This document shows positions 34,107-64,000 of a DNA stretch of 64,000 bases, piece after piece (position 1 is the stretch's first letter; each line of letters starts with the position of its first letter). Source of the stretch: Paramoeba atlantica (Eukaryota > Protista > Discosea); assembly GCA_977017575.1 (NCBI GenBank), contig CDRNVI010000050.1, positions 41,506 through 105,505 on the forward strand. Reading direction: 5' to 3'. Made by a program: the position numbers and the translations under genes. The notes below the pieces were generated by a model. That model made no database searches. It saw nothing but the letters and a program-made list of their open reading frames with translations, and had not been told where the DNA came from.

Positions 34107-35929
34107 TTAGAATTGATAAGACAAATCGGTAAGCCGATTTGCTTTTTCCATGGCCGGAAATTTAGGCCTATGGTAACCTGAATTCAGGTGTGTTCCTGGG
34201 CGATCTGTGCCCATGCCAGGGAGCACTCGAATATCACCGAAGCATTGTGCCCTGGATATTGCTACTGTGAGCTTGGCGAGTCCTCAACCACGTCCTATCA
34301 TTCAAGTCAAGAATAACACCTTTCTTCACGGTGATACCTTGTACTTTGTGATACGTATAGGCAAATCCCAATTCCACTTAAAAGTTTCCTTGGGTTGTCT
34401 TGTCATGGTGCTGCGCCTTTTTGGCGTAAAACTCTACTCCTGACCCCTTCTCAATGCATTGCATAAAAGAAGGGGCTTTTCTTAGATAACGAACACAATC
34501 AATAGTGTCGTATGACAAATCGTCTGACACAAGATCTTTCATTTCAATCACGGTCCCATTCGCAATTTTCAATGTATAAGGAGCAATGTTCTCCGTGATT
34601 ACAACGGGTGCTCCTTTTACAAATACAGAAAATGCTTCAGGGTGTGTGTCAATGAGTTTACCTTGGACGTTATCGCCTGTCCATGCAAACAATGGGCAAT
34701 TGTGACGTCTGGCAAAAATTCTTGCCATTGCGACATTAATCTTGTGTCGTTCAATATTTGTTCCAACAATGACAATTGCATTGCGGAACTTTTCTTGGTC
34801 CTCAGAGGTCAGAGGTTTTACCAATTGGATGAACTTCAACCCCTCATTCGGAGTTTTTCGAACAAGACGCAAGATATCTGAAAATACAGTATCTTGTCGT
34901 GCTCGCATTTGCTGTTTGAGTTCAAACACATGCGAGACTTGAAAAATATTCCCAAAAATGGGATTATTACCAGGAGGACTATCTTCTATGGTAAGAGATG
35001 CTCCTTGTACTGGTCGCAGCTGATAAAAATCTCCCAAAAAGAGCATGTTGATGCCTCCATAGGGGAGCTGCTCATTGCCTTTGATTTGCTGCAATCTAGT
35101 GTTGATACAAGCAAGGAAACACTTGCTGATCATTGACACTTCGTCGACTATGATTAATCGACATTTCTCATACCTTTAGAAGCCTACTGCTTGAAAGATG
35201 TTTCAAATTTCTTGCAGTAGCCCCTATCGGTATGCAGAGTGAAGCGTGTATTGTGCAACAGTGCAGTACTGATGCGGCGATCCCATTGGGCGCCATTGTA
35301 ATACATTGGCTTCCCAGTTCTTGCATTATAAAACGGGAAGCTAGACTTTTCCCGGTTCCGGGGCCACCGAGCAGAAACATACATTTCCGCTCGCGGTCTA
35401 GTTTCCCGTTTAGTAAATTTTCAATTTGATTTACGCACTGTTTCTGTGCTTAGTTCAGTTCAATGGAACTGTTGACTTCTTGAATGTAGCTGCGATCGAA
35501 CGTAATCTCGTCGTATTACTGCGAGCCAGCGGACGATCCTCATTAAAATGAGCTCTGTCCATTGGTGCACTTGGCTCAGATTGAGCCGAAGTTGCAAGTC
35601 GCTCGTTTTGAATCATTTCAGCATAGCGCTCTCTCGCATTTATGACTGAAATATTGGACCTCGTCCTTGTCATCGTCGATGCAAGATCAACATTTTCTTC
35701 AGGGGAGTTCTCAGTAGAACTTCCTAACGCGGCCGTTAAAGTTCACGTTTGTAGTTCGCAGTATGCATTCTGCTGAACCAATCGCTCTTCATTGACCACT
35801 GCAGTGTTCTGCTGTGCTTCAAGAGCATCTTGAAGATGAGGTTCAACCTCTCGGACTTCAAGCTCATTTTCGTACACAATGTTGCGTGCTAATCTTGCTT
35901 CTTCTAGATGGCAAGCATCTTTGCGTTAT
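34107..35929 (-). pseudogene. Helitron PIF1-family helicase, frameshifted
   Basis: GGPGTGKS (I), MAPNGIAA (Ia), IIVDEVSM (II), GDFYQLRPV (III), FAYTYHKVQGITV (V), LTVAISRA (VI), spread over several frames. Confidence 0.9.
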
Positions 35930-35976
35930 ACAAATCTGCCTATCCTATCCTATCCTATAAGACCGATTTGCATCGG

Positions 35977-38900
35977 TTAAGAACACATCCGTTTTTGTCG
36001 TCGCTTCGACGTCTTTCTCTCAGGTGAATTCGCCCTTTCATGCTCCTTGTCCGCTGAACCGGGCGTGGTACGTCTTTCATGCAACTTTGTATTTTTGGCA
36101 TCACATTCCTCAGGCAAACACTCTTTCTTTTCAGGAGAATCCACTCCAGTCTCTACAGGTGGCGAGGTACCCTTTTTGGAGAGAGGATCACCTTCTGCAA
36201 TCTTGAAGTAATCCCGTCTTTTCCCTAATGGCTTAGGTATTTGGCCACAGTGTTTCCGAGGACGATTCATGGCTTGAACGGTTTCTGAGCTAACCCTTTG
36301 AGCTTCTGAGGCACTTGTCGCAGTCTTTCTCCTCTTTATTTCTGAGGCTGGGACTATTTTTCTCGACCCTGCAAGCGCCAAGGTGTCTGCCTTCTCATTG
36401 TAAATGTTCCCGTTGTGGGATTTCACTTTGCACACGTAACACCTTTTATCCATCGATTGGAGCGTTCGAATTTCCCGATCCAATTTCTCAAGGATACCCC
36501 CATTCGGTAGATTGTGATACCCAATGATTCGCCGTCGTAGACGAGTATGATGGAAGAAATTCCATACATAGAACGAATCGGTGTGTATGACAACTGTTTG
36601 AGCCTCATTAGGTATCCTGTCCAGCGCTTCCCTCAGCGATTCAACCTCAGCTCTCTCAGCTGAGCCAGCATCCAATGCTATGGAATAGTATTTGTCTTCT
36701 GTTCCACTCATTCTCAGAACTATTCCCGCACCGGATCTTTGTTCCTTGGACCCCCGCAACTGCCGAACAGAGCCATCAATATACATATGAACCTCACCCT
36801 CACTCATGGGGAACGGATCCGAGCCTTCCTCCACAAATTGTAGCTCATAAGAGCTTTTGCTTTTGACCGCTTGAGTGTGTTTAGTTTTCCACCTTGGAGA
36901 CCTTAATACCTCATACATCGGAAGTGGTTCAAGTTTCTGCCTGAGCTCATCGCATAGCTTTTGCCAGTGTATCCGATCCTGCGAGTAAACAAGCGCCTGC
37001 TCCAGAGTGACCCCTAGATCATTAAAACTTGCTTCGCTAGGAGAAATATTTCTTGTTTTTTCCGTGCTATTCCATTGAACGAGCTCGCGAAACGTAGAGG
37101 AGTGCCTGAGCATGTGGCCAACGATTTTCGCACGGGCAACACGATGCACGGTCGAAAATCGAGGCGTACCACAATACAAGGACTCTAATGGGTAGCAGTG
37201 TCCGAAATCGTCAAGCTTTGCTGAGTTACAAGCGAATCTCCTCATCATATTTACCTCAACCTCCGTTTTTCGAAGCATTTTGTTAGAAAGAGAAAGACAG
37301 GCTGCACCAAACGTTAAAATAGGGTAGATCAAGCAGTCAAACAGGCGTATTTTCGTGGCAGCACTCAGAGGAGAAGCCCAAATGCCACTGAGTTTACGAA
37401 ATGCTGCCCATGTGAGCCTTAACCTGTCCTTGATGGGGGATGATGCTGTAGCATCTTGAAGATGACCAAGATGCCGGTAGGAATCCACAAGAGGAATCTT
37501 GCCAAGCGATCCTGCTCGAAGTTCTCGCGTCCCCCCCGGAACTTTCCCAAAGGCCATCCACGCAGTCTTGGTTTTCCCCACGGCAATCCTCAGATTAGCT
37601 GGTTTTGCCTCATTTGCCGTAGCTTCGATCATTTGCGATATTTCATGTTTCGTGGAAGCTAAAAGTGCTATGTCGTCTGCGTAGTCGATGTCCTTTAGTC
37701 TAAATTTTTGAATTCCCCTGCTTTTCGTCCCGCTGCTCCTTAGAAGAATCCCGAGCGGCTTGTTATCGAGTGCTTTGTTGAGAATCCTATCGATTACAAG
37801 CACAAAGAGATAAGGAGCAAGCACGTCCCCTTGAAGAATTCCTGTTTCAATGGGAAAAGAATCCGTATTTCCGTATGGTGTGCGGACTATTCCTTTTAAA
37901 TCCGAGTACAAGGACATTACCATCCTAGTAAGCGCGGGTCCGACATGAAAGGCATTCAATGCAGCACGGATCGCATGAAACGATACCGAGGGGAATGCTT
38001 TTGCGAAGTCCATGAATGCCACTGCAATGCCTTTCTGGCCCCTGGTCGCACGAACTCTTGCATCATTCAAAATGATTTGCGCCCCTGCCGTGGACCTTTC
38101 TGGCCGAAAACCAAATTGACTGTCGCGAAGGAGCGGCTCGATGGATGGTCTGATTCTTTTCAGGATCATTGCATTCATCAATTTAACCGCACTGTTCACG
38201 AGACAGATTGGCCGCCAATTCGCTATTTGTGTCAGGTCGCCTTTTTTTGGAATAGGCACCTGAAGGACAATTTTCCAGGACGCAGGCGAAACCCCTGTTC
38301 GATGAACCTCGTTTATAATATGTAATAAGGATTTTCTCAGCTCAGCATGTTCTGTGATCATTCTGAGTGCCTCCGCCGGAATTTGGTCTATTCCAGGTGC
38401 CTTGTTGCGCGCTAGTCTAATGATGCCGCCCTCGAGCTCTTCTACAGTGAAACTTTCATCGTTGATTGGTACTTTCGGGCTGACTACTTTGTCAAATTTT
38501 ATATCTTTATCTCCGCGATCATCGGACCCCATACGAGCAAAGAAATCTTTAACAATGTTAAGAGTTTCCCTTGTCGACGAGGTCTCGATGCAAAGAGTCT
38601 CCCTGTACAAACCGCAAATTCTACGTAGCGTACGCCACGGATTAGAACGGTTTCGCCGCAGACCTGCTTCAATTTCGGCGCATTCTTGCCCAATCTGCGC
38701 CTCAATTTCTTCTCCGTGCTCTTTTAGCACTTCCTTGAAGTGGTCCGGTTTTCGACTCTGAAGAAATAAGTCGCGAAACCCTGAGATGCGCGGTGTTTCT
38801 GTACCCGGTGGTGTGGTTTCTGTCCCTGTAGGTGCGTTGGTCGTTTTTGTGGTTCGGTCCTTTTTTGAGAGTCTTTTCGCTGTGTGTACCATATTTTCCG

Positions 38901-40569
38901 ATAAGTGTTCCCATGTGATCTCTTCCTCTTTCTTCGCCATTTCCCACACTGCTTGCTGGAAGGATGCCTTCTTCTCTTCATCTCCAAGTCTTGGCCAGGG
39001 TACCTTGCTTTGCCCCCCTGTACCTTTAGAACGCCACTTGATTTTCACATCCGCCATAACGACGCAGTGTACTGTAGGCACTGGCGCCTTGAGTACTTTG
39101 TGCCTCCTAATGCTGGAGGCAAAGCGCTCACTGACCATGATGTGGTCAAGCTGTCTCCGCACCTTGTTGTCCCCACGCCTTTTGCTACCTCCCTTTTTGC
39201 CGACCTCCCCTTTTACGTGCATGTACTCGCAGGCCTTGTCCCCATTTTCCTCTCCTTCCCTTCCCCTCTTCACCATACCGTTGTTATCCGTCCCCTCTGG
39301 CTCTGATCCTTTCCTTCCCATTTCCACCTTTCCTTCTTCCCCCTTCTGCCCCAGCTTCTCTGTTCCTACGTTGCGACGGTCCTTTGTCTCCGCCCTCCTG
39401 CCCGGCAGCTCACATGTCCATTTCCTCTTGCTCGGGCAGAGGGTGTGTGCTGACTTACAGCCAATGGAGCACAAGAGGCCTTTCAGCTGAGAGACCGCTG
39501 GGGGATCCATGCTCGGATTCGTCACGAGCGTTATCGGTGCATTGAAATCCCCCATGACCAATAAAGGTCTTCGTTTCCGTTCAGCCTTGACCTCACGACA
39601 CGCCTTGTCCAAGTCACCCAGAAATGCCGCATGAACGGCTTCTGAGGAGTCCCGTATTGGGGCATAGACATTGAACAAAGTGCCGGTCCCCTCTTCCAGG
39701 GGATACTCAGCTCCCATCACCCTGTTGCTCACCATCCAAACCTTCCGAAACGCATGCCGGCTCACTATGGCCATGCCATTATATGAATCGCGTGCGGCGG
39801 CCGACTGCAAATACAGGTGAAACCTCTCCCCTAGGTTTTCAACCTGCCTGTAGAGGATTCCATCCTCATGTCCTTCCTTCGAGAAATTGTATCTGGTCTC
39901 CTGAAGGCACATGACACCAACCCCCCTTACCTGCATGAAAGCAAGCACCTCGTTCAAACGGGTGCATCTTCGAAGAGAGAATTCATCTTCCCCCTCGAGT
40001 TTTAACGTCGTAACATTAAGCGTTGCAACGGTGGTGTTCTCCTTCACAGCGGAACCTTTGAGGTTCTCCGAATCTCGTTGGGCGTGTGTGCCACGCGACG
40101 CCCAGTGTGACCGAGGGCGGTGACGGGAGCTCCTTCGTTTCGCCTTTGCCGGGTTACTCACCTGCACCGCGCAGAGCACGACACCTGTATTCGGTAAGGG
40201 GGGAAAGGGGAGAGTCGTGTGCGGCCTCGCCACGTACCGAACACGAAATGTACCGGCCAAAGGTTCACCTCGAGTTACCGAGGATCCCCCCTGAGTATGC
40301 CAGCCTACGCTTTTCAGATAAGCCGGCCCCTCACACACGACCTCGCCCTCCCAAACAAACAAAGTGTCGCAACAGTTGTCGTGTCTCCACGCGACGCGAA
40401 GATGAGCCCCAACGCGGACAAACTTACAGAGCGCCCGCACCGCCCTCAGGCGGAGTTTAGCAGGCCCCTCTCGCTCGGGTGAACGAAAGATGACCCCCCG
40501 ACCACGCTTGGTCCGTGTAAGGGTTTCAAAAACCTCTGTCCCCTTACACGTGCCGGAAGCATCCGCCAT
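35977..40569 (-). CDS. Intact LINE polyprotein (1530 aa): unknown N-domain, APE endonuclease, reverse transcriptase, RNase H
   Basis: APE: LNVTTL, CLQETR, NVYAP, MGDFNA, QLDHIMVS. RT: NWRPICL, QFGFRPERST, DFAKAF, LQGDVLAP, YADD. RNH: YIDGS, AERAE, HTDS, SHNG...NEKADTLA. Confidence 0.95.
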   Translation of the reverse strand: MADASGTCKGTEVFETLTRTKRGRGVIFRSPEREGPAKLRLRAVRALCKFVRVGAHLRVAWRHDNCCDTLFVWEGEVVCEGPAYLKSVGWHTQGGSSVTRGEPLAGTFRVRYVARPHTTLPFPPLPNTGVVLCAVQVSNPAKAKRRSSRHRPRSHWASRGTHAQRDSENLKGSAVKENTTVATLNVTTLKLEGEDEFSLRRCTRLNEVLAFMQVRGVGVMCLQETRYNFSKEGHEDGILYRQVENLGERFHLYLQSAAARDSYNGMAIVSRHAFRKVWMVSNRVMGAEYPLEEGTGTLFNVYAPIRDSSEAVHAAFLGDLDKACREVKAERKRRPLLVMGDFNAPITLVTNPSMDPPAVSQLKGLLCSIGCKSAHTLCPSKRKWTCELPGRRAETKDRRNVGTEKLGQKGEEGKVEMGRKGSEPEGTDNNGMVKRGREGEENGDKACEYMHVKGEVGKKGGSKRRGDNKVRRQLDHIMVSERFASSIRRHKVLKAPVPTVHCVVMADVKIKWRSKGTGGQSKVPWPRLGDEEKKASFQQAVWEMAKKEEEITWEHLSENMVHTAKRLSKKDRTTKTTNAPTGTETTPPGTETPRISGFRDLFLQSRKPDHFKEVLKEHGEEIEAQIGQECAEIEAGLRRNRSNPWRTLRRICGLYRETLCIETSSTRETLNIVKDFFARMGSDDRGDKDIKFDKVVSPKVPINDESFTVEELEGGIIRLARNKAPGIDQIPAEALRMITEHAELRKSLLHIINEVHRTGVSPASWKIVLQVPIPKKGDLTQIANWRPICLVNSAVKLMNAMILKRIRPSIEPLLRDSQFGFRPERSTAGAQIILNDARVRATRGQKGIAVAFMDFAKAFPSVSFHAIRAALNAFHVGPALTRMVMSLYSDLKGIVRTPYGNTDSFPIETGILQGDVLAPYLFVLVIDRILNKALDNKPLGILLRSSGTKSRGIQKFRLKDIDYADDIALLASTKHEISQMIEATANEAKPANLRIAVGKTKTAWMAFGKVPGGTRELRAGSLGKIPLVDSYRHLGHLQDATASSPIKDRLRLTWAAFRKLSGIWASPLSAATKIRLFDCLIYPILTFGAACLSLSNKMLRKTEVEVNMMRRFACNSAKLDDFGHCYPLESLYCGTPRFSTVHRVARAKIVGHMLRHSSTFRELVQWNSTEKTRNISPSEASFNDLGVTLEQALVYSQDRIHWQKLCDELRQKLEPLPMYEVLRSPRWKTKHTQAVKSKSSYELQFVEEGSDPFPMSEGEVHMYIDGSVRQLRGSKEQRSGAGIVLRMSGTEDKYYSIALDAGSAERAEVESLREALDRIPNEAQTVVIHTDSFYVWNFFHHTRLRRRIIGYHNLPNGGILEKLDREIRTLQSMDKRCYVCKVKSHNGNIYNEKADTLALAGSRKIVPASEIKRRKTATSASEAQRVSSETVQAMNRPRKHCGQIPKPLGKRRDYFKIAEGDPLSKKGTSPPVETGVDSPEKKECLPEECDAKNTKLHERRTTPGSADKEHERANSPERKTSKRRQKRMCS

Positions 40570-40584
40570 GTTTTTATAATTAGA

Positions 40585-43500
40585 TTACAAAAAACGATGG
40601 TCTTACAAAAAACGATGGTCTTACAAAAAACGATGGTCTTACAAAAAACGATGGTCTTACAAAAAACGATGGTCTTACAAAAAACGATGGTCTTACAAAA
40701 AACGATGGTCTTACAAAAAACGATGGTCTTACAAAAAACGATGGTCTTACAAAAAACGATGGTCTTACAAAAAACGATGGTCTTACAAAAAACGATGGTC
40801 TTACAAAAAACGATGGTCTTACAAAAAACGATGGTCTTACAAAAAACGATGGTCTTACGAAAAACGATGGTCTTACAAAAAACGATGGTCTTACAAAAAA
40901 CGATGGTCTTACAAAAAACGATGGTCTTACAAAAAACGATGGTCTTACAAAAAACGATGGTCTTACAAAAAACGATGGTCTTACAAAAAACGATGGTCTT
41001 ACAAAAAACGATGGTCTTACAAAAAACGATGGTCTTACAAAAAACGATGGTCTTACAAAAAACGATGGTCTTACAAAAAACGATGGTCTTACAAAAAACG
41101 ATGGTCTTACAAAAAACGATGGTCTTACAAAAAACGATGGTCTTACGAAAAACGATGGTCTTACAAAAAACGATGGTCTTACAAAAAACGATGGTCTTAC
41201 AAAAAACGATGGTCTTACAAAAAACGATGGTCTTACAAAAAACGATGGTCTTACAAAAAACGATGGTCTTACAAAAAACGATGGTCTTACAAAAAACGAT
41301 GGTCTTACAAAAAACGATGGTCTTACAAAAAACGATGGTCTTACAAAAAACGATGGTCTTACAAAAAACGATGGTCTTACAAAAAACGATGGTCTTACAA
41401 AAAACGATGGTCTTACAAAAAACGATGGTCTTACAAAAAACGATGGTCTTACAAAAAACGATGGTCTTACAAAAAACGATGGTCTTACAAAAAACGATGG
41501 TCTTACAAAAAACGATGGTCTTACAAAAAACGATGGTCTTACGAAAAACGATGGTCTTACAAAAAACGATGGTCTTACAAAAAACGATGGTCTTACAAAA
41601 AACGATGGTCTTACAAAAAACGATGGTCTTACAAAAAACGATGGTCTTACAAAAAACGATGGTCTTACAAAAAACGATGGTCTTACAAAAAACGATGGTC
41701 TTACAAAAAACGATGGTCTTACAAAAAACGATGGTCTTACAAAAAACGATGGTCTTACAAAAAACGATGGTCTTACAAAAAACGATGGTCTTACAAAAAA
41801 CGATGGTCTTACAAAAAACGATGGTCTTACGAAAAACGATGGTCTTACAAAAAACGATGGTCTTACAAAAAACGATGGTCTTACAAAAAACGATGGTCTT
41901 ACAAAAAACGATGGTCTTACAAAAAACGATGGTCTTACAAAAAACGATGGTCTTACAAAAAACGATGGTCTTACAAAAAACGATGGTCTTACAAAAAACG
42001 ATGGTCTTACAAAAAACGATGGTCTTACAAAAAACGATGGTCTTACAAAAAACGATGGTCTTACAAAAAACGATGGTCTTACAAAAAACGATGGTCTTAC
42101 AAAAAACGATGGTCTTACAAAAAACGATGGTCTTACAAAAAACGATGGTCTTACAAAAAACGATGGTCTTACAAAAAACGATGGTCTTACAAAAAACGAT
42201 GGTCTTACAAAAAACGATGGTCTTACAAAAAACGATGGTCTTACAAAAAACGATGGTCTTACAAAAAACGATGGTCTTACAAAAAACGATGGTCTTACAA
42301 AAAACGATGGTCTTACAAAAAACGATGGTCTTACAAAAAACGATGGTCTTACAAAAAACGATGGTCTTACAAAAAACGATGGTCTTACAAAAAACGATGG
42401 TCTTACAAAAAACGATGGTCTTACAAAAAACGATGGTCTTACAAAAAACGCTGATCTTACGAAAAACGATGGTCTTACGAAAAACGATGGTCTTACAAAA
42501 AACGATGGTCTTACAAAAAACGATGGTCTTACAAAAAACGATGGTCTTACAAAAAACGATGGTCTTACAAAAAACGATGGTCTTACGAAAAACGATGGTC
42601 TTACAAAGAACGATGGTCTTACAAAAAACGATGGTCTTACAAAAAACGATGGTCTTACAAAAAACGATGGTCTTACAAAAAACGATGGTCTTACAAAAAA
42701 CGATGGTCTTACAAAAAACGATGGTCTTACAAAAAACGATGGTCTTACAAAAAACGATGGTCTTACAAAAAACGATGGTCTTACAAAAAACGATGGTCTT
42801 ACAAAAAACGATGGTCTTACAAAAAACGATGGTCTTACAAAAAACGATGGTCTTACAAAAAACGATGGTCTTACAAAAAACGATGGTCTTACAAAAAACG
42901 ATGGTCTTACAAAAAACGATGGTCTTACAAAAAACGATGGTCTTACAAAAAACGATGGTCTTACAAAAAACGATGGTCTTACAAAAAACGATGGTCTTAC
43001 AAAAAACGATGGTCCTACAAAAAACGATGGTCTTACAAAAAACGATGGTCTTACAAAAAACGATGGTCTTACAAAAAACGATGGTCTTACAAAAAACGAT
43101 GGTCTTACAAAAAACGATGGTCTTACAAAAAACGATGGTCTTACAAAAAACGATGGTCTTACAAAAAACGATGGTCTTACAAAAAACGATGGTCTTACAA
43201 AAAACGATGGTCTTACAAAAAACGATGGTCTTACAAAAAACGATGGTCTTACAAAAAACGATGGTCTTACAAAAAACGATGGTCTTACAAAAAACGATGA
43301 TCTTACAAAAAACGATGGTCTTACAAAAAACGATGGTCTTACAAAAAACGATGGTCTTACAAAAAACGATGGTCTTACAAAAAACGATGGTCTTACAAAA
43401 AACGATGGTCTTACAAAAAACGATGGTCTTACAAAAAACGATGGTCTTACAAAAAACGATGGTCTTACAAAAAACGATGGTCTTACAAAAAACGATGGTC

Positions 43501-46500
43501 TTACAAAAAACGATGGTCTTACAAAAAACGATGGTCTTACAAAAAACGATGGTCTTACAAAAAACGATGGTCTTACAAAAAACGATGGTCTTACAAAAAA
43601 CGATGGTCTTAAAAAAACGATGGTCCTACAAAAAACGATGGTCTTACAAAAAACGATGGTCTTACAAAAAACGATGGTCTTACAAAAAACGATGGTCTTA
43701 CAAAAAACGATGGTCTTACAAAAAACGATGGTCTTACAAAAAACGATGGTCTTACAAAAAACGATGGTCTTACAAAAAACGATGGTCTTACAAAAAACGA
43801 TGGTCTTACAAAAAACGATGGTCTTACAAAAAACGATGGTCTTACAAAAAACGATGGTCTTACAAAAAACGATGGTCTTACAAAAAACGATGGTCTTACA
43901 AAAAACGATGGTCTTACAAAAAACGATGGTCTTACAAAAAACGATGGTCTTACAAAAAACGATGGTCTTACAAAAAACGATGGTCTTACAAAAAACGATG
44001 GTCTTACAAAAAACGATGGTCTTACAAAAAACGATGGTCTTACAAAAAACGATGGTCTTACAAAAAACGATGGTCTTACAAAAAACGATGGTCTTACAAA
44101 AAACGATGGTCTTAAAAAAACGATGGTCCTACAAAAAACGATGGTCTTACAAAAAACGATGGTCTTACAAAAAACGATGGTCTTACAAAAAACGATGGTC
44201 TTACAAAAAACGATGGTCTTACAAAAAACGATGGTCTTACAAAAAACGATGGTCTTACAAAAAACGATGGTCTTACAAAAAACGATGGTCTTACAAAAAA
44301 CGATGGTCTTACAAAAAACGATGGTCTTACAAAAAACGATGGTCTTACAAAAAACGATGGTCTTACAAAAAACGATGGTCTTACAAAAAACGATGGTCTT
44401 ACAAAAAACGATGGTCTTACAAAAAACGATGGTCTCACAAAAAACGATGGTCTTACAAAAAACGATGGTCTTACAAAAAACGATGGTCTTACAAAAAACG
44501 ATGGTCTTACAAAAAACGATGGTCTTACAAAAAACGATGGTCTTACAAAAAACGATGGTCTTACAAAAAACGATGGTCTTACAAAAAACGATGGTCTTAC
44601 AAAAAACGATGGTCTTACAAAAAACGATGGTCTTACAAAAAACGATGGTCTTACAAAAAACGATGGTCTTACAAAAAACGATGGTCTTACAAAAAACGAT
44701 GGTCTTACAAAAAACGATGGTCTTACAAAAAACGATGGTCTTACAAAAAACGATGGTCTTACAAAAAACGATGGTCTTACAAAAAACGATGGTCTTACAA
44801 AAAACGATGGTCTTACAAAAAACGATGGTCTTACAAAAAACGATGGTCTTACAAAAAACGATGGTCTTACAAAAAACGATGGTCTTAAAAAAACGATGGT
44901 CCTACAAAAAACGATGGTCTTACAAAAAACGATGGTCTTACAAAAAACGATGGTCTTACAAAAAACGATGGTCTTACAAAAAACGATGGTCTTACAAAAA
45001 ACGATGGTCTTACAAAAAACGATGGTCTTACAAAAAACGATGGTCTTACAAAAAACGATGGTCTTACAAAAAACGATGGTCTTACAAAAAACGATGGTCT
45101 TACAAAAAACGATGGTCTTACAAAAAACGATGGTCTTACAAAAAACGATGGTCTTACAAAAAACGATGGTCTTACAAAAAACGATGGTCTTACAAAAAAC
45201 GATGGTCTTACAAAAAACGATGGTCTTACAAAAAACGATGGTCTTACAAAAAACGATGGTCTTACAAAAAACGATGGTCTTACAAAAAACGATGGTCTTA
45301 CAAAAAACGATGGTCTTACAAAAAACGATGGTCTTACAAAAAACGATGGTCTTACAAAAAACGATGGTCTTACAAAAAACGATGGTCTTAAAAAAACGAT
45401 GGTCCTACAAAAAACGATGGTCTTACAAAAAACGATGGTCTTACAAAAAACGATGGTCTTACAAAAAACGATGGTCTTACAAAAAACGATGGTCTTACAA
45501 AAAACGATGGTCTTACAAAAAACGATGGTCTTACAAAAAACGATGGTCTTACAAAAAACGATGGTCTTACAAAAAACGATGGTCTTACAAAAAACGATGG
45601 TCTTACAAAAAACGATGGTCTTACAAAAAACGATGGTCTTACAAAAAACGATGGTCTTACAAAAAACGATGGTCTTACAAAAAACGATGGTCTTACAAAA
45701 AACGATGGTCTCACAAAAAACGATGGTCTTACAAAAAACGATGGTCTTACAAAAAACGATGGTCTTACAAAAAACGATGGTCTTACAAAAAACGATGGTC
45801 TTACAAAAAACGATGGTCTTACAAAAAACGATGGTCTTACAAAAAACGATGGTCTTACAAAAAACGATGGTCTTACAAAAAACGATGGTCTTACAAAAAA
45901 CGATGGTCTTACAAAAAACGATGGTCTTACAAAAAACGATGGTCTTACAAAAAACGATGGTCTTACAAAAAACGATGGTCTTACAAAAAACGATGGTCTT
46001 ACAAAAAACGATGGTCTTACAAAAAACGATGGTCTTACAAAAAACGATGGTCTTACAAAAAACGATGGTCTTACAAAAAACGATGGTCTTACAAAAAACG
46101 ATGGTCTTACGAAAAACGATGGTCTTACAAAAAACGATGGTCTTACAAAAAACGATGGTCTTACAAAAAACGATGGTCTTACAAAAAACGATGGTCTTAC
46201 AAAAAACGATGGTCTTACAAAAAACGATGGTCTTACAAAAAACGATGGTCTTACAAAAAACGATGGTCTTACAAAAAACGATGGTCTTACAAAAAACGAT
46301 GGTCTTACAAAAAACGATGGTCTTACAAAAAACGATGGTCTTACAAAAAGCGATGGTCTTACAAAAAACGATGGTCTTACAAAAAACGATGGTCTTACAA
46401 AAAACGATGGTCTTACAAAAAACGATGGTCTTACAAAAAACGATGGTCTTACAAAAAACGATGGTCTTACAAAAAACGATGGTCTTACAAAAAACGATGG

Positions 46501-49276
46501 TCTTACAAAAAACGATGGTCTTACAAAAAACGATGGTCTTACAAAAAACGATGGTCTTACAAAAAACGATGGTCTTACAAAAAACGATGGTCTTACGAAA
46601 AACGATGGTCTTACAAAAAACGATGGTCTTACAAAAAACGATGGTCTTACAAAAAACGATGGTCTTACAAAAAACGATGGTCTTACAAAAAACGATGGTC
46701 TTACAAAAAACGATGGTCTTACAAAAAACGATGGTCTTACAAAAAACGATGGTCTTACGAAAAACGATGGTCTTACAAAAAACGATGGTCTTACAAAAAA
46801 CGATGGTCTTACAAAAAACGATGGTCTTACAAAAAACGATGGTCTTACAAAAAACGATGGTCTTACAAAAAACGATGGTCTCACAAAAAACGATGGTCTT
46901 ACAAAAAACGATGGTCTTACAAAAAACGATGGTCTTACAAAAAACGATGGTCTTACAAAAAACGATGGTCTTACAAAAAACGATGGTCTTACAAAAAACG
47001 ATGATCTTACAAAAAACGATGGTCTTACAAAAAACGATGGTCTTACAAAAAACGATGGTCTTACAAAAAACGATGGTCTTACAAAAAACGATGGTCTTAC
47101 AAAAAACGATGGTCTTACGAAAAACGATGGTCTTACAAAGAACGATGGTCTTACAAAAAACGATGGTCTTACAAAAAACGATGGTCTTACAAAAAACGAT
47201 GGTCTTACAAAAAACGATGGTCTTACAAAAAACGATGGTCTTACAAAAAACGATGGTCTTACAAAAAACGATGGTCTTACAAAAAACGATGGTCTTACAA
47301 AAAACGATGGTCTTACAAAAAACGATGGTCTTACAAAAAACGATGGTCTTACAAAAAACGATGGTCTTACAAAAAACGATGGTCTTACAAAAAACGATGG
47401 TCTTACAAAAAACGATGGTCTTACAAAAAACGATGGTCTTACAAAAAACGATGGTCTTACAAAAAACGATGGTCTTACAAAAAACGATGGTCTTACAAAA
47501 AACGATGGTCTTACAAAAAACGATGGTCTTACAAAAAACGATGGTCTTACAAAAAACGATGGTCTTACAAAAAACGATGGTCTTACAAAAAACGATGGTC
47601 TTACAAAAAACGATGGTCTTACAAAAAACGATGGTCTTACAAAAAACGATGGTCTTACAAAAAACGATGGTCTTACAAAAAACGATGGTCTTACAAAAAA
47701 CGATGGTCTTACAAAAAACGATGGTCTTACAAAAAACGATGGTCTTACAAAAAACGATGGTCTTACAAAAAACGATGGTCTTACAAAAAACGATGGTCTT
47801 ACAAAAAACGATGGTCTTACAAAAAACGATGGTCTTACAAAAAACGATGGTCTTACAAAAAACGATGGTCTTACAAAAAACGATGGTCTTACAAAAAACG
47901 ATGGTCTTACAAAAAACGATGGTCTTACAAAAAACGATGGTCTTACAAAAAACGATGGTCTTACAAAAAACGATGGTCTTACAAAAAACGATGGTCTTAC
48001 AAAAAACGATGATCTTACAAAAAACGATGGTCTTACAAAAAACGATGGTCTTACAAAAAACGATGGTCTTACAAAAAACGATGGTCTTACAAAAAACGAT
48101 GGTCTTACAAAAAACGATGGTCTTACAAAAAACGATGGTCTTACAAAAAACGATGGTCTTACAAAAAACGATGGTCTTACAAAAAACGATGGTCTTACAA
48201 AAAACGATGGTCTTACAAAAAACGATGGTCTTACAAAAAACGATGGTCTTACAAAAAACGATGGTCTTACAAAAAACGATGGTCTTACAAAAAACGATGG
48301 TCTTACAAAAAACGATGGTCTTACAAAAAACGATGGTCTTACAAAAAACGATGGTCTTACAAAAAACGATGGTCTTACAAAAAACGATGGTCTTACAAAA
48401 AACGATGGTCTTACAAAAAACGATGGTCTTACAAAAAACGATGGTCTTACAAAAAACGATGGTCTTACAAAAAACGATGGTCTTACAAAAAACGATGGTC
48501 TTACAAAAAACGATGGTCTTACAAAAAACGATGGTCTTACAAAAAACGATGGTCTTACAAAAAACGATGGTCTTACAAAAAACGATGGTCTTACAAAAAA
48601 CGATGGTCTTACAAAAAACGATGGTCTTACAAAAAACGATGGTCTTACAAAAAACGATGGTCTTACAAAAAACGATGGTCTTACAAAAAACGATGGTCTT
48701 ACAAAAAACGATGGTCTTACAAAAAACGATGGTCTTACAAAAAACGATGGTCTTACAAAAAACGATGGTCTTACAAAAAACGATGGTCTTACAAAAAACG
48801 ATGGTCTTACAAAAAACGATGGTCTTACAAAAAACGATGGTCTTACAAAAAACGATGGTCTTACAAAAAACGATGGTCTTACAAAAAACGATGGTCTTAC
48901 AAAAAACGATGGTCTTACAAAAAACGATGGTCTTACAAAAAACGATGATCTTACAAAAAACGATGGTCTTACAAAAAACGATGGTCTTACAAAAAACGAT
49001 GGTCTTACAAAAAACGATGGTCTTACAAAAAACGATGGTCTTACAAAAAACGATGGTCTTACAAAAAACGATGGTCTTACAAAAAACGATGGTCTTACAA
49101 AAAACGATGGTCTTACAAAAAACGATGGTCTTACAAAAAACGATGGTCTTACAAAAAACGATGGTCTTACAAAAAACGATGGTCTTACAAAAAACGATGG
49201 TCTTACAAAAAACGATGGTCTTACAAAAAACGATGGTCTTACAAAAAACGATGGTCTTACAAAAAATGATGGTCTT
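40585..49276. repeat. Tandem array of an 18-bp unit (TTACAAAAAACGATGGTC), ~483 copies, 8.7 kb
   Basis: Seen directly; highly homogeneous with sparse variant units; ends ~16 bp upstream of the LINE ATG. Confidence 0.99.
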
Positions 49277-49278
49277 GT

Positions 49279-49550
49279 AAAAGTTTCCACCAGTGGGGGC
49301 CATGTTCAACAGGACGGGAAGTTCACCGTGTTCTGCCAACCCAGTGCGGCGGCACTTGTGAGCTGCTCCGTTTCCGGCCTGGCCCGGTTCAGTGCACGTT
49401 ACACGCAGGGCAACCTCTGCGCTACCGCAGATTCTCCCCGGTACCACACTGTAAGGGAGGCGGCGAACTTCCCGTCCATTAAGAACAGGTGCCACGGCGA
49501 ATCCTTATTTCGCTGCCCAAAGGGTGACAGGTTTGGAACCCCAGCACCCC
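49279..49550 (-). ncRNA. 7SL: Full-length eukaryote-type SRP (7SL) RNA, ~270 nt, ending in TTTT
   Basis: Helix 8 GGGC-CAGG-CCG-GAAA-CGG-AGCA-GCTC; helix 6 TCTGCG-GTAG-CGCAGA (GNAR loop); long helix 5 GGACGGGAAGTTCGCCG / CGGTGAACTTCCCGTCC; small Alu domain GCTG-GGGTTCCAAACC-TGTCA(UGUNR)-CCCTTTGGG-CAGC. Confidence 0.88.
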
Positions 49551-49562
49551 AACAAATCTGCC

Positions 49563-54029: not shown

Positions 54030-54915
54030 GGGGGAGTCCAGGGGGGGGGTCCAGGGGGGGGTCATGGTCGAGCAAATTGTTTATTTCGAAAAAAATAGTT
54101 TTCGAAAACAAACCGCAGAAAGGGTAGCCGGGGTCTTGGCGCGCATTTTCCACCCCCTTACCCGGGGGTGATCCCCCCGCGTATCCGCAGGACGGGTCCG
54201 CCAAATTCGGAATTTTTCGGAAAAAAAAATTTGAAAAAAAATTTCAACTTGGCGAAAAAAATGGCAAAAAAAATATTTTTCCAAAATCGTTTCCCCTATT
54301 GTATTTTGATAGTTTGGGACCTACACTAGCTTGCTCCTCAGTTGTTTTCGCAAGGCATCACTTCTTCTAACCGTGGTGTGGCCCTCAAAATGACACATTT
54401 TTGACTAAAGAAGGTGAAAAAGTATTTTTCGGACCTAAAGGGGCATTTTTGTGTCGAAAGAATCCAATCCAATCCAAATCATTCCGGATTGCTCCGGATG
54501 GTCACTGGCAAGCCAGACCCTTCACAAACAGATTTGGAAGTTCCGAGGCCGACGTCCTCTACCTCTAGTCGAAAGAATGGTATGGTTGGAGTCGAATTCT
54601 CTGCCCAATACGTTTGGTAGGCTTCCATTCATGCCTTAGAGTGTTCCATTCATGCCTTTCAGGCTTTCCATTCATGCCTAAGAGTGATTTCCCACGCGCA
54701 AATGTCGGATTTAGTGCTCTGACAGCAAAAATACGCGAAAATCACCCCATTTTTACCCGAATTTCGGCTATTTTTGGCTATAATCTTTCCGTTTTCCAGG
54801 CTAATTTTCCTTTTATAGGCTCTTTGTTAAACGCGGCGGTAGTTTTCAACGCGAAGCGCGCAGCATGAGTGACTTCTACGTTGAAAACAACCACCGCGTT
54901 TAACGAAGAGCCTAA
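54030..54915 (-). repeat. Long-hairpin repeat copy carrying a SINE insertion
   Basis: Palindrome at ~54815-54915; body colinear with the other copies except for the insert at 54464-54567. Confidence 0.85.
54464..54567 (-). mobile_element. 5'-truncated SINE with 11-bp TSD
   Basis: GTCGAAAGAAT at 54453-54463 and 54568-54578; SINE 3' end with TCCGGA-GCAA-TCCGGA and (GGATT)n tail. Confidence 0.85.
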
Positions 54916-57760: not shown

Positions 57761-57975
57761 TCAGGGAACCAGCCCCCCTACCCGGCTTACACCTCTTGGG
57801 TGAGCCGTGTTGACGTACAGTTCGTCGACGCAGCGTGTTGGCAACAGCATGTTGGTGCCGCCTTGGACAAGCGGAAACTGGTAGAGGACGTCGGCTTCGG
57901 AACTTCCAAATCTGTCTGTGAAGGGCCTGGCTTGCCAGTGACCATCCGGAGCAATCCGGAACGATTCGGATTTTT
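57761..57975 (+). mobile_element. SINE 3' half (diverged copy)
   Basis: Colinear with 63.56-63.79 kb; ends ccggagcaatccggaacgattcgga plus a T-run; no TSD found. Confidence 0.8.
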
Positions 57976-57989
57976 TTTTTTTGCGATGA

Positions 57990-58803: not shown

Positions 58804-61667
58804 GCTCAAAACAACGGGTTTAACTAAACCTTTGTTTTTTTGAACATTTTCAAAAATATGGCGGAGGCGCCCGGGCCTGCACAGCTAGGAATTATTAACC
58901 TTCTGTTTAGGTCCACGTTAGGTCGGGGTGCTCTGTTTGACCCGATGTTGGTGTCAGACGGGCATGCTAAACTTCGCTCCCTTGCAGTGATGAGCATTAG
59001 TAAAATTATTCGCCCAGGTTACAACATCGCACTCTGCTGGAGATACGCGAGCAGTGCGGAGTTTCGGATTTGGAAGGGCACTGTAACTCAACGAAGGCCT
59101 GGTTTCCTCTTTCAGCTAGGTCGCTGGCGGGTAAAGTACCACCAGCGATCGGAAACGCTTCCCTTTCCGCCGTATGATTCGCGAATCGTGTTATGCGGAG
59201 CACGCATTCGAAAACCTGGGCGTTCGAACAACCGTAGAAAAGCACGGAAAACTAGGGTACTGTGTGGCAAGCATGCCCTACGCGACGACGACCCGAAAGG
59301 GTCTGCTGTGAAGAAGTGTCTGGCTGTAGGCACTCTTAATACGACATCATTGAAACTTGAAGGTGACGACGTTTTCAAACTGAAAGCTTCTGCTCGATTG
59401 CACGAGATTGTGCGATACATGTCACAAACCAACTTGCATATACTGGCTCTCCAGGGGACAAGGTTTACTTTTACTTCTGGCGAAGGATTTGATATTTTAA
59501 AGCGCAAGCTTCGACACGGGAATAAAATCTTTTTCATCTACCTTATGTCTGCAGTGAAAGGGTATAACGGTATGGGGTTCATCACGCAAGAGCCAATAAA
59601 GGCGTGGAAAGTAAATGATAGGATAATTGCCGGCGAGTTCAACATCGAAGGAGGGTCAGCCTTTATGCTCAACGCATATGGGCCGACGCGTGACTCCCCA
59701 GAGGAGGCCAAACAAGAGTTTGATATTTCTTTGACAAACGCGTTTCACGAAGCAGTAGGCAAAGCCCCTCGAAGACCCGCACTTCTACTTGGGGACTTAA
59801 ATGCACCTCTCACTTTCGGCAAAACGACAGAAGAAGACGAACTTGTTGTTGAAAGGTTGAAGGGGCTTTTGGAAGGGATAGATTTCAAATCAGGACACTC
59901 CTTATGCCCTAGCAAGCGAGTATGGACATGCATATTGCCTAATGATGCTAAACGCCAGTTGGATCACATTGCAGTGTGCCCACGCTTTGCATCAGCTCTG
60001 CGACATCATCAAGTTTTTGCCGCTCCTACGCCGACAGTGCACTTTCTTGTGCGAGCAGAGATTCGAATCAAATGGAAGATATCGTCCAACATCAAAAGAT
60101 CGAAAATACACTGGTTTCAATTATCAAACACAGAACATGCAGAGAAGTTTAACAACAGAATTTGTGAACAGGTCGCAGCGCAACTGCATACAGAAGATCT
60201 TCCTTCCTGGGATCTTCTTGCCTCTTGCCTTCGATCTTCGGGAAAGGAAATTCCGAAACCAATCACAAAAATATCTCTTGATATACAGGCACCTGTTGAA
60301 GGATTGCAAGGTGCTGAAACAGATAACCTACGCAACATTTTCATGCAAAGCAAAAGGTATAAGGACTTTAATGAACTAGTATCACACAACAGGGGAGCAA
60401 TCGAGGATGCTATAACTAGGTCTTGTGAAGTCCTAGAATCTAAGATGAAGAAAAATCACGCCAGCCCATGGAGAGCAGTAAAAGAAATATGTGGAGTTGA
60501 TCGAGAAGACTTCAACATACCGGGGACCTCAAACAGACAGAGGCTGGCGGAGATAAAAACGTTTTTTGAAGCTTTTGCTGGAGACACAGGGGGCGACGAC
60601 AATATAAGATTCTTAGAGGCGAATCTTCCAACAAACACACCTGAGGACGCCCCTTTCACTGAGGAAGAGCTTCGAAGCGGAATTTCACACTTTGGGGGGG
60701 GTAAGGCACCGGGAAAGGATGAAATCCCCATGGAGGCTTTTGCGTGCATCGTTGATAATGATTATCTTAGAAAGTGGTTGCTCAGCATTATCAACCGGGT
60801 TTACGATACGGGATTGGCTCCGGAAGTTTGGGGTGACGTCCTATAAGTTCCGATACCGAAGAAAGGTGACTTGACTCTTTTAAAGAATTGGAGGCCCATA
60901 TGCTTAGTAAATTGTGTTGTTAAACTTATGAACTGTTTAATATTACAACGAATTCGTCCGTATGTAGAGCCTGTGCTTCGCCATAATCAATGTGGGTTCA
61001 GACCTGACCGTTCGACAATGCAAGCCCAGGCGATTCTCAACGAAGCACGAGTAAAAGCATTAAGAGGAAACGGGATGTGCATTGGTTTTGTAGATTTTTC
61101 GAAAGCTTTTCCATCCGTTTTATTTAGTGCCATTCATGCATCCCTAGTGGCGTTTCACATTGGACCGAAATTGCGAGAAATGATTATGTCAGTATGTCGG
61201 AATATGCGAGGGGTCGTGCGAACATCATATGGTTTAACAGAAACATTCCCCATTACAACCGGCATTCTTCAAGGGGATGTCCTCGCTCCCTACCTCTTCG
61301 TAATGGTTCTGGATCGTATATTAAGCAAAGCTATTGATTCAAAATCCCATGGCATCCTTCTATCACCCAAAGGTACCAAGAGCAGAGGCCTGAGGGAAAC
61401 ACGTCTTACGGATCTAAATTATGCTGATGATCTTCTTTTCTTTTCAGATAACAAGGCTGATCTACAGAGTATGATTGAGGATACAGCGGAACAAGCCCTC
61501 TCCGCGAACCTAAGAATAGCAGTAGGCCCTGCTAAAACAGCGTGGATGCAACTAGGAAGGCAACGAGGCCCCGATGAAATGATATCTGATCCTTTGGGGA
61601 CGGTGCTCAAAGTACTTTCCTATAGGTATCTGGGAAATCTTTTCCATGAAACTGAACCATTGGCATG

Positions 61668-62186
61668 AGTACATGAGGTGGCGGAGTGGCAAGAACTCAA
61701 AGTTTGAAGCACATGGTGCCCAGACGGCGAGTTCAAACCCACTCATCGCAATATCCCCGGCGGCCTCACTCTAAGAGGCTGGGCTGATAACCGACTAGGC
61801 CCAGTACTCGGAGGACCGTCCCGGACCCTCCCCTCAGGGAACCAGCTCCCTTAGTACGGAGGTGGCGGAGTGGCAAGAACTCAAAGTTTGAAGCACATGG
61901 TGCCCAGACGGCGAGTTCAAACCCACTCATCGCAATATCCCCGGCGGCCTCACTCTAAGAGGCTGGGCTGATAACCGACTAGGCCCAGTACTCGGAGGAC
62001 CGTCCCGGACCCTCCCCTCAGGGAACCAGCTCCCTTACCCGGCTTACACCTCTTGGGTAAGCCGTGTTGACGTACAGTTCGTCGGAACTTCCAAATCCGT
62101 CCTCGGAACTTCCAAATCTGTCTGTGAAGGGTCTGGCTTGCCAGTGACCATCCGGAGCAATCCGGAATGATTTGGATTTGGATTTG
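61668..62186 (+). mobile_element. tRNA-headed SINE (duplicated head, internal deletion) with 14-bp TSD
   Basis: GAACCATTGGCATG at 61654-61667 and 62187-62200; heads at 61675 and 61858 with A box TGGCGGAGTGG and B box GAGTTCAAACC; tail (GATTTG)x3. Confidence 0.85.
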
Positions 62187-62264
62187 GAACCATTGGCATG
62201 TATTAGGGACAGGTTGCGACTTACGTGGGCAGGTTTCTCAAAATTTCGGGGCATATGGGTATCG

Positions 62265-62660
62265 GATTTTCCGGATTGCTCCGGAGATAAAGAACTCCGG
62301 ATGGTCACTGGCGAGCCAGACCCTTCACAGACAGATTTGGAAGTTCCGAGGCCGACGTCCTCTACCAGTTTCCGCTTGTCCAAGGCGGCACCAACGTGCT
62401 GTTGCCAACACGCTGCTGGGACGAACTGCACGTCAACACGGCTCACCCAAGAGGGGTAAGCCGGGTAAGGGAGCTGGTTCCCTGAGGGGGGGGGTCCGGG
62501 ACGGTCCTCCGAGTACTGGGCCTATTCGGTTCTCAGCCCAGCCTCTTAGAGTGAGGCCGCCGGGAATATTGCGATGAGCGGGTTTGAACTCGCCGTCTGA
62601 GCACCATGTGCTTCAAACTTTGAATTCTTGCCACTCCGCCACCTCCGCCGCTATCCCCCG
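62265..62660 (-). mobile_element. Full-length tRNA-headed SINE (~396 bp) with 12-bp TSD
   Basis: ATATGGGTATCG at 62253-62264 and 62661-62672; cloverleaf-like head GCGGAGG...TCATCGCA; 3' TCCGGA-GCAA-TCCGGA hairpin. Confidence 0.88.
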
Positions 62661-62745: not shown

Positions 62746-64000
62746 ATGTCGGAATATGCGAGGGGTCGTGCGAACATCATATGGTTTAACAGAAACATTC
62801 CCCATTACAACCGGCATTCTTCAAGGGGATGTCCTCGCTCCCTACCTCTTCGTAATGGTTCTGGATCGTATATTAAGCAAAGCTATTGATTCAAAATCCC
62901 ATGGCATCCTTCTATCACCCAAAGGTACCAAGAGCAGAGGCCTGAGGGAAACACGTCTTACGGATCTAAATTATGCTGATGATCTTCTTTTCTTTTCAGA
63001 TAACAAGGCTGATCTACAGAGTATGATTGAAGATACAGCGGAACAAGCCCTCTCCGCGAACCTAAGAATAGCAGTAGGCCCTGCTAAAACAGCGTGGATG
63101 CAACTAGGAAGGCAACGAGGCCCCGATGAAATGATATCTGATCCTTTGGGGACGGTGCTCAAAGTACTTTCCTATAGGTATCTGGGAAATCTTTTCCATG
63201 AAACTGAACCATTGGCATGAGTACATGAGGTGGCGGAGTGGCAAGAACTCAAAGTTTGAAGCACATGGTGCCCAGACGGCGAGTTCAAACCCACTCATCG
63301 CAATATCCCCGGCGGCCTCACTCTAAGAGGCTGGGCTGATAACCGACTAGGCCCAGTACTCGGAGGACCGTCCCGGACCCTCCCCTCAGGGAACCAGCTC
63401 CCTTAGTACGGAGGTGGCGGAGTGGCAAGAACTCAAAGTTTGAAGCACATGGTGCCCAGACGGCGAGTTCAAACCCACTCATCGCAATATCCCCGGCGGC
63501 CTCACTCTAAGAGGCTGGGCTGATAACCGACTAGGCCCAGTACTCGGAGGACCGTCCCGGACCATCCCCTCAGGGAACCAGCTCCCTTACCCGGCTTACA
63601 CCTTTTGGGTAAGCCGTGTTGACGTACAGTTCGTCCCAGCAGCGTGTTGGCAACAGCACGTTGGTGCCGCCTTGGACAAGCGGAAACTGGTAGAGGACGT
63701 CGGCCTCGGAACTTCCAAATCTGTCTGTGAAGGGTCTGGCTTGCCAGTGACCATCCGGAGTTCTTTATCTCCGGAGCAATCCGGAAAATCCGATACCCAT
63801 ATGCCCCGAAATTTTGAGAAACCTGCCCACGTAAGTCGCAACCTGTCCCTAATACATGCCAATGGTTCCAAATCCAAATCCAAATCATTCCGGATTGCTC
63901 CGGATGGTCACTGGCAAGCCAGACCCTTCACAGACAGATTTGGAAGTTCCGAGGACGGATTTGGAAGTTCCGACGAACTGTACGTCAACACGGCTTACCC
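62746..64000. repeat. Duplication of 61194 onward (offset 1552) whose right part is inverted relative to the first copy
   Basis: 62746-~63630 repeats 61194-~62080; 63796-64000 is the reverse complement of ~62055-62264. Confidence 0.9.

Follow-up and report, generated by a model that had tools for sequence, protein, structure and literature searches.

The closest described counterparts of the retrotransposon ends reported here come from fish. For the eel LINE UnaL2, a 3′ stem-loop and a terminal UGUAA repeat are both required, reverse transcription starts within the repeat with slippage, and UnaSINE1 and UnaSINE2 are mobilised through a tail that they have in common with the LINE (PMC1636434). 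For the zebrafish LINE ZfL2, the stem is recognised generally, as a shape, while the loop is recognised specifically (PMC4176376). Both LINEs belong to the L2 clade and are of the stringent type. The trypanosomatid elements ingi and L1Tc have poly(A) ends and a Pr77 signature at their start, and their partners RIME, NARTc and SIDER are internal-deletion derivatives (PMC12278014, PMC5786205). An anole pair from an Ingi-related clade, Vingi-2_ACar and SINE2-1_ACar, is cited in PMC5786205 as having a tRNA-type SINE whose 3′ end matches the LINE. We found no published report of a hairpin-repeat LINE/SINE tail partnership in kinetoplastids, nor of a tRNA-derived SINE there.

The window analysed here is a stretch of 64,000 nucleotides from an assembly filed under Paramoeba atlantica (GCA_977017575.1, contig CDRNVI010000050.1). 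Two full-length KMP-11 genes (150-151 bits) are present in this genome, which fits a genome of kinetoplastid type. On the minus strand the window contains a LINE, here called family A, with a 1530-aa open reading frame (35977..40569) in which an APE endonuclease (PF03372), a reverse transcriptase (RT, PF00078) and an RNase H (PF00075) occur together. A homolog search and Atlas returned no named ingi sequence or LINE clade; among named proteins the best matches, at ~30-34% identity, were hypothetical proteins of metazoans, and the Atlas matches were generic.

A first-pass annotation of the window had described a hairpin followed by a GGATW tail at the 3′ end of this LINE, and reading the minus strand base by base confirmed the structure. 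The TAA stop codon (35979-35977) overlaps the first stem base of the hairpin ACCGAT-GCAA-ATCGGT (35962..35977), which is made up of ACCGAT at 35977-35972, GCAA at 35971-35968 and ATCGGT at 35967-35962. From the sequence reading, a spacer CTTATA (35956..35961) leads to the tail (GGATA)3GG (35939..35955). The 3′ UTR, ~38 nt long, therefore comprises little beyond the hairpin and the tail. The target-site duplication (TSD) follows directly: its 3′ copy CAGATTTGT lies at 35930..35938 and its 5′ copy at 49552..49560, where it precedes the 5′ end of the unit, which has an SRP-RNA head, giving a length of 9 bp, or 11 if the GG of the tail is included (35930-35938/40 and 49552-49560/62).

Approximately 25 family A copies are 98-100% identical across their last 300 nt, and the hairpin is kept in all of them. 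The tails comprise 2.5 to 6 units with variable end points within the repeat, and two copies (L004 and L015) finish with a GGATT unit. The loop is GTAA in two linked copies and TCAA in one diverged pair. Intact frames of 1534-1535 aa are present among the copies, and family A is the commonest single family, accounting for 25 of the first 100 matches to the module patterns given below. The 39 bases at the end of the window LINE probably make up the whole of the module by which the 3′ end of this young non-LTR retrotransposon, of the APE-RT-RNase H type, is recognised.

A search of the genome with the RT gave >100 scored matches, whose identities fell in bands ranging from 48% to 100% and of which 20 representatives were retrieved; the LINE 3′ ends read are those of families other than the 55%, 54%, 50% and 48% RT-identity families and a second LINE of the window at 58.9 kb. 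A hairpin followed by a GGATW tail was found in at least 12 related LINE families or module types, with RTs about 58-100% identical to that of family A. Among families ending in GGATT, the stem-loop is ACCGAT-GAAA-ATCGGT in the 86% RT-identity family (2 of the first 100 module matches, intact 1535-aa frame), GCCGAT-GTAA-ATCGGC in the 72% family (3 of the first 100), GCCGAT-TTAT-ATCGGC in the 74% family, ACCGAC-ATAT-GTCGGT in F59 (59%), ACCGAC-TTTAC-GTCGGT in a family at 57-59%, and GCCGAC-TTT-GTCGGT in F63 (63%). Families ending in GGATA include F71 (71%; GCCGAC-GCAA-GTCAGC, with ATCGGC in other copies), F75 (75%; ATCGGTT-TTT-AACCGAT) and F76 (76%; ACTGGTT-TTAAT-AACCAGT). Further module types carry the loops TTTAC, TTTAA, TTAC and TTAT. 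The spacer is U-rich and 4-6 nt long across the LINE families, and units of GGATTT and GGATTTT are present in the tails of two GGATT-type LINEs (L062 and L057). An apparent tracking of the tail unit by the last spacer base (A with GGATA, T with GGATT) was dismissed as repeat phase.

Pattern searches of the whole genome gave 114 matches to CCGA...TCGG...(GGATW)2 and 22 to the swapped-arm form, so that LINE-type modules total 136 pattern matches, while the reversed-pattern controls gave 0 in each case. Approached from the tail, a perfect hairpin was found upstream of 81 of 87 GGATW tandem tails in the ~350 kb examined, and five of the other six had a hairpin with one mismatch. The module is confined within the wider group. 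In the same genome, a LINE relative at 51% RT identity (L081, contig C80) has copies whose alignment ends in an A-rich tail, with the module absent, indicating that the hairpin and GGATW end mark one subclade and that it is this subclade that the SINE described below resembles.

Several further LINE sequences were read alongside these. A public contig (L086) is an F71 copy of the same genome. L081 and L083 are LINE copies of the same genome interrupted by other repeats, the latter having no readable 3′ end. No GGAT tail was seen in L082, a public contig that may not be from the same genome, and the contig of L085 stops 18 nt past the stop codon. L084, from a different metagenome, has a hairpin followed by (TGG)6 and is a single case.

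The first-pass annotation had proposed, from one LINE and one SINE, that the stem covaries while the GCAA loop is kept. Covariation of the stem was borne out, with 12 LINE families giving much firmer evidence of it than the comparison of one LINE with one SINE. In a trimmed alignment of 14 rows comprising LINE families and the SINE, the 6-bp helix was paired in 98.8% of cells, and five of the six stem pairs showed compensatory changes on both sides. The covariation score was 0.639 compared with 0.226 in shuffles, and 0 of 500 shuffles reached the observed value; as the rows are related families, these shuffle counts overstate the significance, and it is safer to judge by the slid controls (at most 44% paired) and by how many distinct pair types occur. 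RNAalifold independently yielded the identical helix. With the LINE rows alone, 71 of 72 cells were paired and compensatory changes fell at the identical five pairs. Single-sequence fold z-scores were weak (-1.2 to -1.9). The SINE copies have one common stem, and there is no covariation within the SINE family.

Constancy of the loop did not survive the wider comparison, since a kept GCAA holds for the pair of family A and the SINE, while GTAA, GAAA, U-rich and other loops occur among the other families. Loops seen across the LINE families were GCAA, GTAA, GAAA, TCAA, TTAT, ATAT, TTT, TTTAC, TTTAA, TTAC and TTAAT. A GNRA loop is present in four LINE families (GCAA or GTAA in family A, GAAA in the 86% family, GTAA in the 72% family, GCAA in F71) and in the SINE, and at least eight other module types have U-rich loops of 3-5 nt that are not GNRA. 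The loop is therefore not a conserved part of the module, and both the stem sequence and the last base of the repeat (GGATA or GGATT) also vary by family.

The SINE ends in the same way. On the plus strand its hairpin TCCGGA-GCAA-TCCGGA (62151..62166), captured by the motif TCCGGAGCAATCCGGA, is followed by the spacer ATGATTT and the tail GGATTT-GGATTT-GGA (together 62167..62188), and the TSD GAACCATTGGCATG is found at 62187-62200 and 61654-61667. A second 3′ end lies on the minus strand at 54461..54498 (hairpin 54483-54498, spacer 54476-54482, tail (GGATT)3 at 54461-54475); the annotation had placed these two ends at 62150-62186 and 54464-54495, both correctly. A third, on the plus strand at 57945..57982, has its hairpin at 57945-57960, a spacer ACGATTC and a tail of GGAT then 12 T. 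An inverted copy on the minus strand (hairpin 62270..62285) has an extra insertion of TCCGGA plus 10 nt upstream, and the GGAT tail is absent; two more hairpins, at 63770-63785 on the plus and 63889-63904 on the minus strand, lie within an inverted duplicate (63770..63904) of 62151-62285. Altogether the motif has six matches in the window compared with 0.03 expected by chance, and the SINE hairpin has 302 exact copies in the genome (45.7 Mb) compared with 0 for the reversed control. The proposal of a common LINE/SINE 3′ signal, consisting of a hairpin, a short spacer and GGATW repeats, is thus supported. In the SINE head two motifs ~40 nt apart were recognised by eye, TGGCGGAGTGG as an A box and AGTTCAAACCC as a B-like box; no tRNA was detected there by ARAGORN or Rfam.

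Comparison of 48 distinct SINE ends showed that the tail consists of ATGATTT followed by units of GGAT plus 1-16 T. It is therefore made of GGAT-based repeats, as had been described, but not strictly of (GGATT)n or (GGATTT)n, and its distance from the hairpin is the same as in the LINE modules. TSDs of 18 clean copies had a median length of 11 bp (range 9-22). Those of LINEs were 9-11 bp for the window unit and 13 bp for L021, a truncated copy, two cases only; SINE and LINE lengths agree, as the annotation had suggested. In 15 of the 18 SINE copies the first 1-7 bases of the TSD run on in the tail register, which fits priming on the repeat by the nicked target.

The register of the TSDs would also be expected if the GGAT repeats alone mattered, through a relaxed, tail-primed recognition in which the SINE hairpin was incidental or served RNA stability or Pol III 3′-end formation. 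The T-runs of the tail could terminate Pol III transcripts, and when the SINE end was folded alone, the predicted minimum free energy structure did not use the hairpin: a rival hairpin between its 3′ arm and the first tail unit was favoured (-11.2 compared with -9.7 kcal/mol). However, 0.95% of random window positions have a 6-bp Watson-Crick hairpin (loop of 3-5 nt) lying 4-7 nt upstream, a chance of ~1% that leaves the identity of the SINE loop with that of family A uncounted. Moreover, compensatory changes have preserved the hairpin in the LINEs, where it is therefore under selection. Taken together, these observations make a role for the repeats alone very unlikely.

The explanation that we regard as likely overall is instead a 3′ module conserved in related LINE families, together with a SINE that is mobilised in trans through it. 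The sequences show the anatomy of the ends, the compensatory changes that accompany their conservation, the copy numbers and the TSDs. By analogy with UnaL2 and ZfL2, the LINE protein would bind the hairpin. Synthesis of cDNA would then begin within the GGAT repeats, with the nicked target serving as primer through 1-3 nt of microhomology, and slippage would alter the repeat number and the length of the T-runs. As the ~300-copy SINE ends in the common architecture, with a private stem, its RNA is most likely copied in trans, through target-primed reverse transcription, by the protein of at least one of these LINEs. Mobilisation in trans by this LINE group appears well supported on sequence grounds.

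Identifying the partner is less straightforward. Aligning the 3′ ends of related LINEs with the SINE tail, as the annotation had advised, revealed an architecture and a helix in common, but the loop is not common and the SINE stem was seen in no LINE. The hairpins of the SINE and of family A agree at 10 of 16 positions; three lower-middle pairs of the SINE stem match the LINE consensus, and the three that differ are all compensated. The annotation had favoured as the driver either the family of the window LINE, which proved to be one of several candidates, or perhaps the relative at 58.9 kb. This second LINE (58840..61668, plus strand, APE and RT) is cut at 61668 by a SINE insertion and its 3′ end is absent from the window. 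Its RT is 58% identical to that of family A, and it represents a separate family with six other copies that are 97-98% identical, among them those at C62:12286, C59:351727, C59:64212, C9:222097 and C26:176975; no module pattern match was found at the expected distance from any of the six.

The families with GNRA loops (A, 86%, 72% and F71) are the best partner candidates, and the individual features of the SINE end point in different directions among them. The GCAA loop favours family A or F71, both of which are GGATA-tailed. Family A as the driver gains from its being the most numerous single family, from its youth (98-100% identity and intact frames), and from the two copies that finish with GGATT; furthermore, the loop is the family-specific determinant in ZfL2 (PMC4176376), which favours the LINE whose loop the SINE carries. 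However, that loop is not private to family A, the stems differ at three of six pairs, the spacers differ (CTTATA in family A, ATGATTT in the SINE), and so do the tail units (GGATA and GGATT or GGATTT, respectively). Mobilisation of the SINE by family A is accordingly a reading that we advance only tentatively.

The tail unit instead favours relatives with a GGATT tail, among them the 86% and 72% families, with the U-rich-loop families at 58-63% RT identity as further candidates. These relatives match the SINE tail unit, including the longer GGATTT and GGATTTT forms seen in L062 and L057; the GAAA and GTAA loops belong, as does the GCAA of the SINE, to the GNRA type, and the 86% family has retained an intact frame. 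Set against this, the families that combine GNRA with GGATT have few copies (two and three of the first 100 module matches), the abundant GGATT families have loops that are not GNRA, and no GGATT relative has the SINE stem or spacer. A driver among these relatives is a serious possibility, though short of probable.

A stringent SINE usually takes its tail sequence from its partner (PMC5786205, PMC3747384), raising the alternative that the SINE here owes its tail to a LINE family with a TCCGGA stem that has died out, is missing from the assembly or lies outside the set of 3′ ends read. Several LINE families do lie outside that set. Among the pentamer-tailed modules no LINE with the TCCGGA stem was found, and a LINE bearing the exact SINE stem was rejected there, because a module pattern search with a CCGG stem gave 23 matches, all of them with the SINE spacer. 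Nor was any SINE hairpin found at the expected distance downstream of the RT matches, among the matches listed. A vanished or unread donor therefore seems improbable.

The sequence-level homology between SINE tail and LINE 3′ end that is the hallmark of classical stringent pairs was absent among the LINE ends read, and architecture alone is common to the two. As its stem was seen in no LINE, the SINE copies the architecture and not the sequence. Extending this, the SINE might be a structural mimic, and the reverse transcriptases might read a minimal code in which any stem of 6 bp would serve, the loop would be specific to the family and the GGAT repeats would lie at a set distance. The SINE might then exploit several LINE families at once. 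We consider this possible but somewhat doubtful. If true, the dozen co-resident LINE families, with their different loops and A or T variants of the tail, would offer a natural series in which proteins and the RNAs that they recognise have co-evolved pair by pair, within a kinetoplastid of deep branching.

Set beside the fish systems, the elements described here have the same order of parts, with a stem-loop followed by a tandem pentamer (UGUAA in UnaL2/UnaSINE1/2 and ZfL2, GGAUA or GGAUU here). As in those systems, a SINE bears the module, the repeat number varies as slippage predicts, and the stem is kept by structure while the loops differ between families. In contrast, these LINEs belong to a different clade with a single APE-RT-RNase H frame, in a kinetoplastid host, and the stem is a plain 6 bp with no internal loop or hinge, in a 3′ UTR of ~38 nt. 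Whereas the eel pair has ~60 nt of SINE/LINE sequence homology, the pair described here has its architecture alone in common and is known only from its sequences.

With ingi and L1Tc there are similarities in the kinetoplastid host, the APE, RT and RNase H domains, the non-autonomous partners and the TSDs. However, the LINEs end in a hairpin with (GGATA)n or (GGATT)n rather than poly(A), an A-rich end being found in the 51% relative only, and the non-autonomous partner is an independent, small-RNA-like SINE in place of a deletion derivative. The anole pair Vingi-2_ACar/SINE2-1_ACar, as far as its description is cited in PMC5786205, differs in that its SINE has the actual 5′ and 3′ sequence of the LINE, and in its vertebrate host. 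The Drosophila I element, also a LINE with RNase H, likewise finishes in a short tandem repeat, (TAA)n, and not in poly(A), but neither a partner SINE nor a conserved terminal hairpin is known to be reported for it (PMC3747384).

Stringent LINE/SINE 3′ recognition is a known principle, encountered here in a new lineage, with a probable mechanism and candidate partners. The principle is textbook, and the gain is one of breadth and of a clean comparative data set rather than of a new mechanism. This genome presents hairpin-and-repeat LINE 3′ recognition in a relative of the trypanosomatid parasites, alongside an independent SINE with the same ending. Its co-resident families, with compensatory stems and different loops, provide material for asking which part of the tail is read by the enzyme and how partner specificity evolves.

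The unit of LINE family A, a non-LTR element of the window, spans positions 35930-49562, where it is delimited by a duplication of CAGATTTGT. At its start the unit carries an SRP (7SL) RNA sequence (Rfam match at 49279-49544, 74.6 bits); after this comes a long minisatellite, still upstream of the LINE ORF. The 3′ flank of the element is adjoined by an ORF on the minus strand (34378-35139) with a weak match to PIF1-like helicases (E 1.6e-4, below the Pfam cut-off), which would be compatible with a Helitron.

The 3′ module of this LINE, a hairpin followed by short GGAT-type repeats, has a counterpart at the end of the SINE. At the end of the window, a SINE pair is contained within an inverted duplication of ~600 bp (61840-62440 and 63400-64000), and one of its copies lacks the GGAT tail and bears an extra insert upstream of the hairpin, consisting of TCCGGA plus 10 nt. 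At 62147-62190, the first unit of the tail is complementary to the 3′ arm of the SINE hairpin together with the spacer, so that AAUCCGGA can pair with UUUGGAUU. The resulting predicted fold competes with the LINE-like hairpin and could act as a switch.

LINE and SINE ends were also observed joined to a second short element, which comprises a tRNA-like stretch, a body of ~400 nt and a (CTT)4-74 run (L025:941-1502, minus strand; further copies in the retrieved sequences L023, L048, L050, L018 and L020). In L025 this element runs directly into a 5′-truncated piece of the SINE (its last 55 nt), in L023 it is directly followed by a 5′-truncated LINE family A (last ~470 nt), and in both L048 and L050 by the last ~60 nt of the 76% LINE (named, like those below, by RT identity to family A) with hairpin and tail. 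These combinations of one short element with differing retroelement ends look like either template-switch chimeras or a SINE that swaps tails.

On several contigs of the genome the 3′ modules of LINEs and of the SINE are repeated at constant intervals, with periods of ~3.95 kb (C10 and C105), ~3.05 kb (C96 and C106), 6.485 kb (C12:137-163 kb) and ~2 kb (C21:766-780 kb). Such regular spacing indicates that segments containing retroelement ends have been amplified as tandem arrays.

A copy of the 51% LINE family carries an inserted repeat of ~404 nt (L081:6629-7033) with at least 267 candidate copies genome-wide, and its A-rich end is adjoined by another family of 5′-truncated repeats (L081:7404). 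A LINE with 46% RT identity was identified in a different metagenome, from an unrelated sample (L084:4900-4975; ENA ERZ27280213), where ACCAAC...GTTGGT and then (TGG)6 stand directly past the stop codon, the end of the element being undefined there. This single contig hints that the combination of hairpin and short repeat predates the genome studied here.
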